DNA of 64,000 nucleotides from Macrostomum lignano (lineage: Eukaryota). Positions 38,501 through 44,500 of this stretch are shown piece by piece. The stretch spans positions 149,687 through 213,686 of the forward strand of contig NIVC01002007.1 of the NCBI GenBank assembly GCA_002269645.1, written 5' to 3'. The notes beneath the pieces are model-generated. The model ran no database searches. It was not told where the DNA came from and worked only from the letters and a program-made list of their open reading frames with translations. The stretch's first letter is position 1. Every line of letters begins with the position of its first letter. The position numbers and the translations under genes were made by a program.

Positions 38501-41500
38501 AATCGGCCAGATGTCAAGTGGACTCACGAGGGCGTCGCCATTGGAAACGGGGGCCGCTACTTCATGGACATGACACGTGACGGCGACAGCTATGTTGTCG
38601 TGCTGGAAATCGACGAGGTGAGGATGCGCTTTTGCAGCAAAGCTTGCACCGGATTGAGAATTTTCTTCTTGCTTTGTACCATGGGCAGCTGAAGTAAAAG
38701 GTCGCTACAGTCGGTTTTTATAGAAATGCGGTGGGAGGCCAGAAAGGAGGCCAAAAAGTGCTCATGCGAAAACACGAAAATCAACTACTGAACTCAATTT
38801 CGTCAGTACTCTCTAGTGCCTTAATCATTCTTAGTTTGATTGAGTAGCTTGTCCTTTAATTCATGAGAAGTTCTATAAAATTCTCCAAAATAGCGTCCAT
38901 GTTCCTAAGCTACTGAACTCAAAATTTAAGCTACCCGTGTCGGCATGAAATGGGAGGAGAGAAGAGAGAGTAGAAAGATGCGAAAGGAAGGAGAGAAGAG
39001 AGAAGAAAAACGAAAAAGAGTAGAGGAGAGATAGGGAGAGACGAGAGAGAGGAGAGAGTAGAGAAAGAGAGAAAGGAGAAGAGAGAAAGATGATAGAAAA
39101 GAAAGTAAATATGAGTGAGGAGAGAGGAGAGAGTAGAGGGAAGAAAGGAGGGAGTAGAGCCGAAAGACGAGAGAGAAGAGATAAGAGAGTAGAGATGAGG
39201 GGGGAGAGAGGAGAGAGAAGCGAGAGGGCAGAGGAGAGAGAAGAGAGGAGAGAAGAGGGGAGAGAGGAGAGAGAGGAGAGAGCAGAGCAGAGAGAAAGTA
39301 GAGAATAGAGAAGAGATGAAAGAGGAGAGAGGAAAAAGTAGAGAGAAAAAAGTAGTGAGAAGAAAGAAGAGAATAGATATGAGAGCGCAGAGAGGAGAGA
39401 TGAGAGATAAGAGATGACAGATAAGGGAGTAGAGATGAGAGAGAAGATGAGAGCAGAGAGGAGAGATTAGAGATGAGAGAGCAGACGAGAGAGGAGACGG
39501 GAGAGAGTCTCAGTCTGGATGATGGCAGTCAATTTTTGCAAACAGGGAAAACAATATGGTTTTTGGGAGTTTATAGAGGATTTGGAAGATGGGATTCGGG
39601 TCATAGGATTCAGCTGATGGATTTCAAGGAATGGAGTTCTGGCAATGGGAGTTCAATCCCCTTTCTCCTCCAGCGGAGGAGTTGGCCTCGTAAGATCAAC
39701 GAGCGTATGGTTTCGCACGAATGGCCATAGACATTTGAGCTAGAAAAACTGTAACTGAATAGCATTGTAATTACAATACGCACTTATCGTGAATATTTTA
39801 CAAATTTAAATCGTCATGACTGCTTGTCTCTTCGATGGCCGTTGGTCGACAGTCGGATTCTCAGAAGTAACACTCTTAGACACTACTGCTAATGTTCTAC
39901 TAAGTAGCCAAGCCAGAAAAGTAGACTTTTTTATTTTATTTAGGAAGAAAATGTAAAGAAAAAATTTGAAAATATGCTTGCTCAACGTCGCAGTACAGTT
40001 GAGCAAGTTGTGTATCGTGATAATTTTCACGACTTGTATTTTTTGCCAGAAGTTCAATTGCTGCTTGAGCAAACTGATTTGCAAGTGCCTTCCGATCGCA
40101 ATAGCTGGGAATTGTAGTATCTCAATATCCAAGCAGAACATTACACACAGAATTCAGTAAATTAACGGGTTGATTTATTGGGTAACATCATCGGTGACGC
40201 AACGAAAATATAAGGTTAAAACATGAAAATACTATAAAGGAACTCCGATAGCAAGTCGTATTTACATTTTTAAACAGTTTTCAATAGTCAATCATTGCTA
40301 TTAGTAGGAAAACGGAAGTTATCTGATGAAAATCATTCTCATTAGCATAATCATGGAAGTGCAAAGCAGACTCACTACAAACCTCTTACACATCTTTTCA
40401 AGTGTGAGACAAGTGCTATAGATAGTATCCCCTGCACTTTTACTGAAATGGTTGGAATAGATGAATAATCCTATATACTAAAGATAAGTTAAACGGGACA
40501 GAGACCCGAGGGAGGAGATGGGTAGGAATCAAGGAGTGTAGATGGAAAGGAATGAAGGAGTGAAGATGGACAGGAATGAAGGAGTGAAGATGGATAGGAA
40601 TCAAGGAGTGTAGATGGAAAGGAATGAAGGAGTGAAGATGGACAGGAATGAAGGAGTGAAGATGGATAGGAATCAAGGAGTGTAGATGGACAGGAATGGA
40701 GGAGTGAAGATGGACAGGAATGAAGGAGTGAAGAGGGACAGGAATGAAGGAGTGAAGAGGGACAGGAATGAAGGAGTGAAGAGGGACAGGAATGAAGGAG
40801 TGAAGAGGGACAGGAATGAAGGAGTGAAGAGGGACAGGAATGAAGGAGTGAAGAGGGACAGGAATGAAGGAGTGAAGAGGGACAGGAATGAAGGAGTGAA
40901 GAGGGACAGGAATGAAGGAGTGAAGAGGGACAGGAATGAAGGAGTGAAGAGGGACAGGAATGAAGAAGTGAAGAGGGACAGGAATGGAGGTTAGAAGACA
41001 GTACATTTTGATTGAATTTGCTTTCAGAGAAGGCAATTAATTAATGTTGGCAAAAGAGCCAAAAAATATCGGCGAGTTTCAGGACGCGTCAACTTCATCG
41101 ACAGCCTCATCCGCCTCCGACAATGGCACCGACGCCGTCGCCGTCTCCTCGCCTTCGTCGCCGCCTCGCCTCTGGCGCAGTAGGCGCATCTTCTCCGCGT
41201 ACTCGGCAAAGCCATGCCGCTCGTAGCGCAGATTTTTGTGCTGGAAGAAGGCCACCCGGATGCTGGCCGGGTCCCAGCGGTTCGGACGTCGTACGGCGGT
41301 GACCGCGCGTGGCTCTCGCTTGCCGGCCTCAATCAGGACGGCGCCGTGCGACAGCGCCACGGCGACGCCACCGCTTGAAGAGTCGCGAAACGCTTCCAAG
41401 GTGTCGGTGAGGAACTCACAGTCTCCTGGGCCCGGCTGGCCTCGGGGCGGCGGAGGCGGCGGTGGAGGTGGAGGCGGTTGCGGCATCGGTGGCTGAACGT

Positions 41501-44500
41501 GCCGCTGCTGATAGCTGGCATGGTGGCAGTAGTTACAGCTGCAGCCACCCTGCTGCTGGCTGCTTGAGTAATAAGGATACCTTTCGTAGCCATTGTGATA
41601 ATATTGATAGGACGAATAGTAAGAATACTGGCTGTGATGATGCCTCTGTTGCCATGGATACTGGCTAGGCTGGATGCTGTAATAGTTCGGGTTTTGCTGC
41701 TGCTGCTGCTGCTGCCGACTGGCGTGCCACCAGCGCTGATAGTCAGGTGACGGAGGAGCGGCTGCTGGAGTGACTGCAGAAGGCGCAACAGGCTCACCAA
41801 TCTGGGGTCGAAAGGACAGCTGTTGCTGCTGCTGTTGTTGCTGTTGCTGCTGCTGTTGCTGCTGTTGCTGCTGCTGTTGCTGTTTCTGCAGCTGCTGTTG
41901 CTGTTGTTGCTGCTTCTGCTGCTCTTGCTGCTTCTGCTGCTGTTGCTGCTGCAACTGTTGAATCTGAGAAGCCAACCGAGATTGCTGGTATTGCTGCTTC
42001 TTCTGCAACATAAGCTGACGCTGCAGTTGCACCTGCTGCTTAAAGTGCTGCGGCTGCTGCTGCTGCGGCTCCCAACGAGGTGGCGACTTGCGAAACCAGG
42101 ACGATATCGGCGGCAGGGGCTTGGCGGATGTCTCCGCCGCTGCCTCGGCCACCACCGCTGATACCGCTGTTGCGGGCGACTCCTCCTTGAATGGGCTCTG
42201 ATTGTTGCTCTTTAGCGACTCAATGCCGCTGTCAATGCTGCCTGGCGAGCCGTCCTCCAGAGTGACCGTCGCGTGATGAAGCGGTGGCTGCTGCTGAACG
42301 GGAGCTGCTGTTGGAGGGGGCGGCGGCGGCGGCGGTGGAGGCGGCAGGACCTGCGGCATTGGCGGCTGCGGCATCGGCGGCTGCGGCATCGGCGGCTGCG
42401 TCCTGAGAGCCCGCTTCCTGCCGGCAGACATGGCAAACAAACCTGTCGACTCCGCGGGGGCTCCGCGCAGTCGAGCGATCCGCGGAAAACTGCTGAGCGC
42501 CTGCAGGTCGCCCGTCTGAAACTTGCGCCGTTGGCCCTCGACGGAGCCGAATTCGTCCGTGTCGCTCAGCGTGTAGTTCGGGAACACGTGCAGCTGCTCC
42601 TCCTGCCGCGCCTGCCAGCCCCGCCGGCCGAGGGCCACCACGACGCTGCAGCCGCCGTCGACCAACGCCGGCTCCTTGTGAGAGTGCGCGCAAAAGTCCA
42701 ACGCCACCGTGGCACCACTGAACGGCCGTCGGCTTGGCGGCGTCTCCGCCGAGCCCAAGCGACAGTCGACGGCGGCGGCTGATTGCCGCGTCTGGTTGGC
42801 GAAGGCCGACGGCGCCGCTGTTGCCAACACGCGGGCCGCCGCGTCGGCCAAGCAGTTGAGGCCGCGCGCCAGGTCTCGCTCGGAGTCAGCGCAGCGCAGG
42901 CGGAATTTACGCGCGGTGCCGCGTGTCCTGGCAAATTTGCAGGCATTGTGAAAGAGGCTCCAGGCGCAGCCGAAGCTGTACACGGCGCCGCAGGTGTCCG
43001 GATCGAAGCCCTGGCAGGCGCAGGTACGCGAGTCGTTGGCCGCGCAGCGCCGCTCGCTAGGAATGCCGGTCCTGGGTAGCTCGGCCCGCAGGTAGCCGAA
43101 CATGTAGTCGGCCAGGTGAGCGGGCACGCCGTCCCAGCACACCATGGCAACGGCGGTCACGGCCGTGTCGCAGGTGTGCCGCTGCCTGTGCCTGACCAGC
43201 GCCAGGTAGCGCTCGGGTTCTGACTGGCGCCGCCTGACGATCCACTTCGCCGCCGGACAGCCGTCGCGTGAGGCGCCGCCCTCCCGCGCCGCCCGCGTCA
43301 ACCGTTCGATGCGGAGCTCGGCGCTGCCCGGCGCCAAACCGAGGCGCGACTCGAGCAGGCGCCTCAGCTCGGCAACTGAGCCGGCGCTTCCCAGGTGATG
43401 CGGCGCCGATTGAATTGGCGCCGAATTGGCGCCGCTGCTGCCGCAGCCTTCGCAGACTGAGCAGGGCTTCGCTGACATGATCACTGATGCTGGGGCTGGG
43501 CTCTGCTGTCTGGGATTGCCTTGGCTTCGGCTCTCTGCCTGTCTCTCGCTCTCGCTCTCTCTTGGTCCGTTGGCGACTCTCTTTTTTGACCTTTCTCTCA
43601 CCGCCACCGCTCACCAATTTGGCTGCTGCTGCCGCTGCTGCCGCTGCTGCCCGGCTCTCCGCCTCTCAAAGCCGCCTCCCGCTGGCCTTCAGACCGCTAC
43701 CACCTCCCGCCCACTAGCCGACCTCACCCTCCCCCCTCTCTCTCCTTCCCTTCCTAGCTCTTCGGCCTTGTCCCCTCTCTCCCTGCCCTCATCGCCTTCC
43801 CTTTTCCACGCCCCGCGCGCCTCCATCAGCGGTGGACGGTTTTCCGCCTGGGTCTCCGCACCGACTGACTCCCTAAGGGCGGAGGCGCACGCTCCACCCC
43901 CACCTCGCCTCCCCGGGGCAGTCCGGCACGCAGCACGCATGCCTCCGCGCGCAGGGGGGAGACAAAGTACGCTTTCCACTCTCCGATCCTCGCGGACATG
44001 CGGGCAGTGGACAACAGATATTTGGCCGAAAGAAATCTTTCAAACGCTAGCGGTCGCGGCTTCAACAACCATGGCTGCTCTGCAGCGCAGTTTTCTGCTT
44101 GCCTGTCTGGCATGTCAAAACCAGAGAGTTCCAGACACTTAATTCATTGTTTCTCTGTTTTCTCCGTTAGCGGAAGGAAAGAAACTTCTATTTTTCAGAC
44201 TGCTCCCCCCGCTTTCGCTTGAGGTCACTGCCGTGTGGATGGGTTGGATTCACCGCGCCGTTCATTCTGTGCTCTCTCATCTTCCCCGCTGCAGCACCTA
44301 GCGAGTCAGCCAGCGGCCCCTCCATCTTGTCTCCCCAACCCCACTCCCCGCCCTTGGCGGCCCAAGGGTCTCCTCTGGCTCTCCCAGCCCAGCCAGCCCA
44401 GCTCAGAGCAGCTCAATCGATAAATCTGGGAGCGGGACTGAGACAGGCCGAGCCCCAGCTGCGGAAGCGGCCAGGCTGGCGGGTGCCCAGTCAGTCCACA

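Follow-up and report, generated by a model that had tools for sequence, protein, structure and literature searches.

A TET-family gene with a substituted iron-binding triad in a flatworm: a candidate pseudoenzyme

In human TET2, the leukaemia variants H1881R/Q/N, R1896M/S/G, S1284F and S1898F and those at R1261 belong to class Ia, in which activity is impaired and the structure is essentially conserved (PMC6625141, Table 1). Nucleosomes and H3K36me1/2 are bound by the Cys-rich domain of TET2, and TET2 with H1881R keeps its nuclear localisation and its colocalisation with H3K36me2 (PMC5412023). In Drosophila, the essential function of TET is largely independent of catalysis and is carried out together with Polycomb repressive complex 1 (PMC11068012). 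What is inferred so far about non-catalytic TET functions comes from alleles of mouse and fly that were engineered to be catalytically dead. Here we describe a TET-family gene at 41079-43607 on the minus strand of a 64,000-nucleotide stretch of contig NIVC01002007.1 (assembly GCA_002269645.1, Macrostomum lignano, positions 149,687 to 213,686 of the forward strand), which is referred to in full as the window. The encoded protein carries substitutions at the iron ligands and at residues that hold 2-oxoglutarate (2OG) and read 5-methylcytosine (5mC). With moderate confidence, we read it as a TET pseudoenzyme that would bind neither Fe(II) nor 2OG, would not oxidise 5mC and would be retained for a non-catalytic role. 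If this is true, its natural loss of iron and 2OG binding with the scaffold kept would be an independent evolutionary test of what the TET fold is worth without oxidation, pointing to the surfaces that carry the non-catalytic function. The literature searched yielded no naturally triad-less animal TET, no natural TET pseudoenzyme and no study of a flatworm TET.

Active-site substitutions in an open TET-family frame

The open reading frame (ORF) listing places an 842-codon frame, starting at GTG, at 41079-43607 on the minus strand. The intact ORF of about 2.5 kb claimed in the preliminary description is thus present, and it matches both Tet_JBP and TET2. By our own arithmetic from base composition, a random open frame of 842 codons at approximately 68% GC has a chance of about 1e-8. 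The protein is recognised by Pfam Tet_JBP (PF12851) with E=7.7e-23 and 80.9 bits against a cut-off of 34.9, and a search of solved structures matches it to human TET2 catalytic-domain constructs (E=1.1e-97). The TET2 match falls in two stretches, amino acids 70-388 and 723-809 in the 842-codon numbering, with a low-complexity insert between them. The profile match, the fold, the zinc scaffold and the place of the insert all put the protein in the animal TET family. An exact look-up found no identical entry in the protein collection searched, and only one TET-like locus is present within the 64 kb.

Residues were numbered by including the TET2 crystal construct as one row of an alignment, and conservation was scored against 86 other TET cluster representatives (insects, molluscs, vertebrates and others). 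The positions at issue are listed below, together with their state in Mlig025520, the M. lignano ortholog of the gene.

41079-43478, minus strand: single-exon TET-family ORF, 799 amino acids counted from the first ATG at 43478; the frame is open from 43607
42672-42680, minus strand: H-K-E (CAC AAG GAG) replacing the Fe(II) motif H1382-x-D1384; HKD in the M. lignano ortholog
41307-41309, minus strand: Arg (CGC) at the distal Fe(II) ligand site H1881, in E-P-R (GAG CCA CGC) for E-L-H; His, as CAT, in the M. lignano ortholog
42663-42668, minus strand: A-L replacing H1386-N1387, with the 5mC-contacting Asn gone; F-A in the M. lignano ortholog, so the loss is shared
41256-41264, minus strand: S-I-R replacing R1896-I-S1898, with the 2OG-binding Arg gone and an Arg two residues on; S-M-S in the M. 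lignano ortholog
41244-41246, minus strand: Phe at the base-stacking Y1902, common to the M. lignano ortholog
42939-42989, minus strand: loop contacting 2OG and DNA, [17 protein letters not shown], with S1284V, S1290A, M1293L and Y1294F

Reading the codons in the window and the alignment to TET2 bears out the substitutions first described, namely Glu for D1384, Arg for H1881, and A, L and F at H1386, N1387 and Y1902. The active site is, in addition, dismantled more thoroughly than was seen then, as R1896S, S1898R, S1284V and the changes in the wedge loop had been missed. H1382, D1384, H1881, R1896 and S1284 are invariant (100%) in the 86 TETs, and the window protein differs at the last four. 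N1387 and Y1902 are 99% conserved, and S1284, S1290, M1293 and Y1294 are conserved at 98-100%; S1290, M1293 and Y1294 are presumably the DNA-contact or wedge residues of the TET2-DNA structure. Further changed positions are D1412, L1418, A1876, T1883, L1899 and V1900. Among the features of an active TET, the window protein therefore lacks the triad, R1896 and S1898 (H1416 is kept), and N1387 and Y1902 (H1904 and R1261 are kept). These sequence facts are solid and unusual.

With H-x-E...R in place of H-x-D...H, and with R1896S, S1284V and S1898R in addition, a canonical hold on Fe(II) and 2OG would be missing, and most likely the protein does not oxidise 5mC. Glu269 and Arg724 are longer than the residues they replace and carry opposite charges, and they could pair as a salt bridge in the vacated metal site.

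Each of the two triad changes is a substitution of one base, GAC to GAG and CAY to CGC, the latter a transition. The preliminary description had noted an out-of-frame CAC as a possible sign of compensating indel errors. A compensating frameshift near this CAC was rejected because the codons pair with those of M. lignano one by one, in register, on either side of it; the out-of-frame CAC is coincidental, and His to Arg is explained by the one CAY to CGC transition. A broader form of this concern is that the substitutions are a sequencing or assembly artefact and that the true codons are canonical. The copies of Mlig025520 do differ by single-base indels typical of long-read assemblies. Long-read errors are, however, mainly indels, whereas the window shows base substitutions and its frame is intact. 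An artefact would demand no fewer than a dozen independent errors at ultraconserved sites, and around each site the M. lignano alignment keeps its register on either side. We regard an artefact as very improbable indeed.

Kinship with Mlig025520 and constraint on the gene

The closest relative of the window protein is Macrostomum lignano Mlig025520, represented by g1, g2 and g3 (PAA84297.1, PAA48208.1 and PAA45902.1), proteins that carry the UniRef name 'Methylcytosine dioxygenase TET'. Over a core of 392 columns the two are 58% identical. Their median identity to the 86 other TETs is 46-48%, against 60% among those TETs themselves. In the coding core, nucleotide identity between the window gene and Mlig025520 is only 66-69%, and the G+C content at third codon positions (GC3) is 0.77-0.85 in the window TET domains versus 0.59-0.66 in Mlig025520. 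Like the window gene, Mlig025520 is a single exon that encodes a short N-terminus, a Cys-rich domain, a double-stranded beta-helix (DSBH) and a P/Q/Y-rich insert. Both proteins have the insert islands SIDSG[IF]ES and LPPIxSWFRKSP and a C-terminal helix, [13 protein letters not shown].

The surroundings of the two genes also correspond. I-set immunoglobulin exons lie at 45900-46274 and 60400-62431 on the plus strand of the window, upstream of the TET gene and on the opposite strand, and M. lignano locus L003 has a 3853-amino-acid I-set/fn3 gene upstream of Mlig025520, again on the opposite strand. The aligned segment is as follows.

60567-61102, plus strand: I-set immunoglobulin exons belonging to a giant Ig/fn3 gene, with a blastn/tblastx match to 520-1040 of M. 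lignano locus L001 in the same relative position and orientation

The I-set exons of the window resemble those of a giant muscle-type Ig/fn3 gene and stand head-to-head with the TET gene, as is likewise the case in L003. The window gene is a positional ortholog of the short, single-exon TET gene of macrostomid flatworms. A kinship with vertebrate-type TET genes was considered and rejected, since both the best relative and the synteny are those of the flatworm M. lignano. The earlier suggestion of an unusual branch, read against a vertebrate-type TET, gives way to this assignment.

Wider searches added no nearer relative. Searched exhaustively with HMMER, a set of 1.84 billion cluster representatives gave 1173 homologs, none of which exceeds 50% identity to the window protein. 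Three word-index homology searches (27, 8 and 6 matches) gave no ortholog beyond M. lignano, and the Ala/Arg/Pro-rich composition of the protein swamped them. Among 17 representatives checked (insects, vertebrates, a scallop and metagenome sequences), no second, canonical flatworm TET was found. M. lignano is reported to retain DNMT1 and DNMT3 and to have low 5mC (PMC11292947, PMC10658182), and therefore a TET homolog is not out of place there.

Mlig025520 exists as three copies that are 99.7-99.8% identical, at L001 10001-12756, L002 10001-12793 and L003 9516-12307. The g2 copy is an intact single-exon protein of 930 amino acids. Relative to it, g1 and g3 each have a 1-bp indel, by which the g3 gene model is truncated and given a wrong-frame end; the shortened N-terminus of the g1 model probably has the same 1-bp cause. 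The indels are either long-read assembly errors or a real inactivation of two of the three copies. The Mlig025520 proteins read S-M-S for R-I-S (amino acids ~868-872), so that the 2OG Arg, invariant in the 86 other TETs, is absent while the iron triad is kept. The literature searched holds no comment on the missing R1896 in the M. lignano TET. A protein named 'methylcytosine dioxygenase TET' without the invariant 2OG Arg bears on 5mC turnover in a regeneration model organism.

This comparison suggests an order for the losses. R1896S, the loss of H1386/N1387, Y1902F and Y1294F are common to the window protein and Mlig025520. Unlike the window protein, Mlig025520 keeps HKD...H (in D-S-H), S1284, S1290, M1293, S1898 and C1374. 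The loss of the triad is specific to the window lineage, because Mlig025520 keeps HKD...H. By parsimony, the 2OG Arg R1896, N1387 and Y1902 would have been lost before the two lineages split, with D1384E, H1881R, S1284V, S1898R and the losses of neighbouring ultraconserved residues following later, in the window lineage only. The preliminary description had proposed a conserved TET pseudoenzyme. Pseudoenzyme is the best-supported reading; 'conserved' applies to R1896S, the N1387 loss and Y1902F, which Mlig025520 shares, and does not extend to the triad, which Mlig025520 keeps.

The same comparison bears on the other proposal made at that stage, an enzyme with changed metal or substrate use, which we consider unlikely. 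In its most explicit form, the protein would be a rewired oxygenase with His and Glu as metal ligands, with the Arg at 1898 binding 2OG or another acid, and with a new substrate pocket. HxE is a legitimate iron motif of 2OG oxygenases in JmjC enzymes. On the same strand, two residues further along, there is again an Arg (S-I-R), and H1416, T1372, H1904 and R1261 are kept. Mlig025520 keeps the full triad without R1896, suggesting that co-substrate binding in the clade may differ. A cationic Arg, however, now stands in for the third iron ligand, and H1881R in TET2 is classed as activity-destroying (PMC6625141). None of the 86 TET representatives (0/86) departs from HxD...H or from R1896. Thirteen changes found only in the window protein, at sites at least 95% conserved, are clustered around the active centre and the DNA wedge, and this cluster looks like released constraint and not like a designed new pocket. 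A rewired oxygenase of this kind is therefore improbable in our estimate.

A separate matter is whether the gene is maintained. Replacements were polarised by the consensus of the 86 TETs. At consensus-defined sites, 35 replacements occur only in the window protein and 26 only in Mlig025520 (p=0.31), and therefore there is no general rate acceleration in the window lineage. At sites conserved at 98% or more, the counts are 10 and 1 (p=0.012), which leaves, by subtraction, 25 and 25 outside this class. The excess is seen only at ultraconserved sites, so the released constraint is confined to the most conserved site class. Most of the ultraconserved sites changed in the window protein are at or beside known ligands of Fe and 2OG and DNA-contact residues.

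The contrary view is that this is a redundant or recently disabled copy heading to become a pseudogene, with a canonical copy elsewhere in a genome that is possibly polyploid, like that of M. lignano; missense damage would be building up in it ahead of any stop or frameshift. Mlig025520 itself has three nearly identical copies (99.7-99.8%), two of which differ by a 1-bp indel as assembled; each triad change took one base and is absent from the sole comparison ortholog; and there is the excess of changes at ultraconserved sites. The absence of overall acceleration (35 vs 26), and of any excess once the ultraconserved class is set aside (25 vs 25), speaks against it, as does the open frame. The window ORF offers 312 possible single-base changes that would create a stop, many of them in Gln codons. 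Under a model of neutral decay, replacing about 9 of 99 ultraconserved residues requires t of about 0.04 substitutions per site, and over such a period the probability of no stop is 0.012 and that of an intact frame about 0.001 with a modest indel rate. GC3 is also as high as in the neighbouring functional genes: the two TET domains (0.85 and 0.77) match the PB1-ZZ ORF (0.82) and the MATE exons (0.82-0.85), whereas a resident retroelement has a GC3 of about 0.51 and the intergenic flanks have a GC content of about 0.45. All of the zinc ligands are kept. The single TET-like locus in 64 kb is silent on the rest of the genome. Taken together, we hold a decaying duplicate to be rather unlikely; if that is all the gene is, the finding is an ordinary one.

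Between the window gene and Mlig025520, dN (non-synonymous divergence) is 0.37 and pS (the proportion of synonymous differences) is 0.71, with dS (synonymous divergence) saturated, so that dN/dS is at most about 0.17 for both branches together and is not lineage-specific. The dN/dS comparison called for in the preliminary description hence came out low, with the limits that dS is saturated and that the same triad substitutions are not shared. Purifying selection may have acted on the window lineage after the loss of the triad; its support is only indirect, from the intact frame, the site classes, the host-like GC3, and the unbroken zinc scaffold and insert islands.

Several points weigh against a maintained pseudoenzyme. 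The sole comparison ortholog, Mlig025520, retains the triad of iron ligands, and its synonymous sites are at saturation against the window gene. The site-class test is based on small counts (10 vs 1). By our own count from the replacement lists, the window lineage has gained G, A, R or P residues 12 times and lost them 3 times, with the reverse trend in Mlig025520, and GC-driven amino-acid drift could have helped to fix changes such as His to Arg (A to G). Finally, the genome that holds the window may have other, canonical copies that make this one redundant, as Mlig025520 has three.

With these points set against it, the TET pseudoenzyme is still the reading we favour. The case for a maintained and expressed dead TET is indirect and comes from one genome: the family, the fold, the substitutions and how rare they are, the synteny and the host-like codon composition are observed, and from these the loss of activity, the maintenance by selection and a scaffold function are inferred. 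Its non-catalytic job would be that of a chromatin or DNA-binding scaffold, acting through the Cys-rich/DSBH surface, and partners might be recruited through two conserved motifs of the insert and a Gln-rich helix. More tentatively, the short macrostomid TET may have split scaffold from chemistry, with Glu and Arg in the iron site of a protein that would still be expressed and selected and would possibly be the only TET of its lineage; on that reading it would be the first animal TET to have lost the triad in nature and yet been maintained.

Domain layout, predicted fold and surroundings

An AlphaFold2 model of the window protein was built from a 21-sequence alignment. The predicted local distance difference test score (pLDDT) lies for the most part between 75 and 95 across the N-terminal domain and between 67 and 85 across the C-terminal half, and the insert is disordered except for one long Gln-rich helix at amino acids 477-553. 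In Foldseek, the model aligns to the TET2-DNA complex 4nm6_A with a target-normalised TM score of 0.89 and a root-mean-square deviation of 2.5 A, and TET-like proteins of fungi, algae and Naegleria are far below it as matches. The layout of the protein is given below.

43443-43463, minus strand: C-S-V-C-E-G-C, differently spaced, where TETs have their N-terminal C-x-C zinc motif (TET2 C1133/C1135); C-N-C in the M. lignano ortholog
42444-43400, minus strand: Cys-rich domain and N-terminal half of the DSBH, amino acids 27-345 (TET2 alignment, AlphaFold2 model, Foldseek)
41427-42443, minus strand: low-complexity P/Q/Y-rich insert, amino acids 346-684, at the canonical TET insert position
42216-42239, minus strand: SIDSGIES, one of the insert's conserved islands (degron-like, DSGxxS); SIDSGFES in the M. 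lignano ortholog
42081-42116, minus strand: second conserved island of the insert, [12 protein letters not shown], from comparison with the M. lignano ortholog
41820-42050, minus strand: Gln-rich stretch, amino acids 477-553, predicted as a single long helix (AlphaFold2 secondary structure, pLDDT 74-88)
41154-41426, minus strand: the DSBH's C-terminal half, amino acids 685-775 (TET2 alignment, AlphaFold2 model)

The zinc scaffold, which had been described as retained, is so in full for the 12 invariant ligands (C1193, H1219, C1221, C1263, C1271, C1273, C1289, C1298, C1358, C1378, H1380 and H1912), with the N-terminal CxC reading CxxCxxC. Every Cys and His that is 100% conserved in the 86 other TETs is kept in the window protein except the iron ligand H1881, and C1374, conserved at 93%, is Ala. 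R1261 and R1262, which contact the DNA backbone, are retained, in agreement with the first reading, along with H1416, T1372 and H1904. The large polyQ/P insert pointed out in the preliminary description is not an unusual addition, as every TET carries its low-complexity insert at the same place. The SIDSG[I/F]ES island fits the DSGxxS pattern of beta-TrCP phosphodegrons, and by its motif SIDSGIES may be called degron-like.

The window as a whole is eukaryotic DNA, with a very high content of mini- and microsatellites. Long arrays, open in several frames, lie at 2835-4650, 11887-12924, 40440-41036, 46134-47193, 47608-50475, 50832-52178 and 54759-56004. One of these arrays, with a period of about 30 bp, begins downstream of the TET stop codon at a distance of approximately 40 bp. 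Inspection by eye of the flanks of the TET gene gave no clear AATAAA signal and no clear promoter, and Rfam and tRNA scans of the whole window gave no match.

Other genes and elements were noted in the window. A retroelement at 13128-15191 (minus strand) has a reverse transcriptase ORF at 13956-15191 (Pfam RVT_1) followed by a GIY-YIG match at 13128-13709, which is sub-threshold at 20.2 bits (cut-off 22.6); the arrangement is Penelope-like, and its GC3 of about 0.51-0.56 is unlike that of host genes. At 24280-25122 (minus strand) is a 280-amino-acid ORF that has a ZZ zinc finger, a marginal PB1 match below threshold (22.7 bits, cut-off 23.6), a GC3 of 0.82 and an architecture like that of p62/SQSTM1 or NBR1. 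An ORF at 15767-17443 (minus strand) has an ALK/LTK glycine-rich domain running directly into an (SIYL)n microsatellite. Exons of a MATE-family transporter occupy 2092-5249 (minus strand), one ORF being Pfam MatE and two being membrane-protein-like by eye, and they are separated by introns filled with tandem repeats. A non-coding element of about 280 bp at 31400-31700 is approximately 80% identical to L001 4640-5010, well above the identity of coding regions. Its end is tRNA-like, with strings resembling A and B boxes, and it is possibly a shared family of short interspersed elements; it has no Rfam or ARAGORN match, is present as a single copy in the window and shows no collinearity with the TET gene.

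Comparison with described TET proteins and a JmjC scaffold

Compared with the human TET2 catalytic domain (PDB 4NM6 and others), the window protein is about 45% identical in both halves. The likeness covers the fold, the zinc ligands, R1261/R1262, H1416, T1372, H1904 and the position of the insert, whereas the window protein is altered in its Fe(II) triad, 2OG Arg, 5mC-reading Asn, stacking Tyr and DNA-wedge residues. The long N-terminal region of human TET2 is absent, and the window gene has a single exon. Vertebrate TET genes are multi-exon.

With respect to the class Ia mutants of TET2, the window protein is altered at four of the five example positions (1881, 1896, 1284 and 1898) and bears two of the exact substitutions, H1881R and R1896S. 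The leukaemia mutants are somatic and single and arise in an active enzyme, whereas the changes in the window are germline, combined and set in an intact gene. A non-catalytic role like that of Drosophila TET (PMC11068012) is proposed here for the window protein, but the fly enzyme is still catalytically competent.

As in a pseudoenzyme, the parent fold is kept and the catalytic residues are lost. JARID2 is a catalytically dead JmjC member of the wider 2OG-oxygenase fold. It would illustrate the same principle as the window protein, a fold kept as a chromatin scaffold without oxidation, in a different family.

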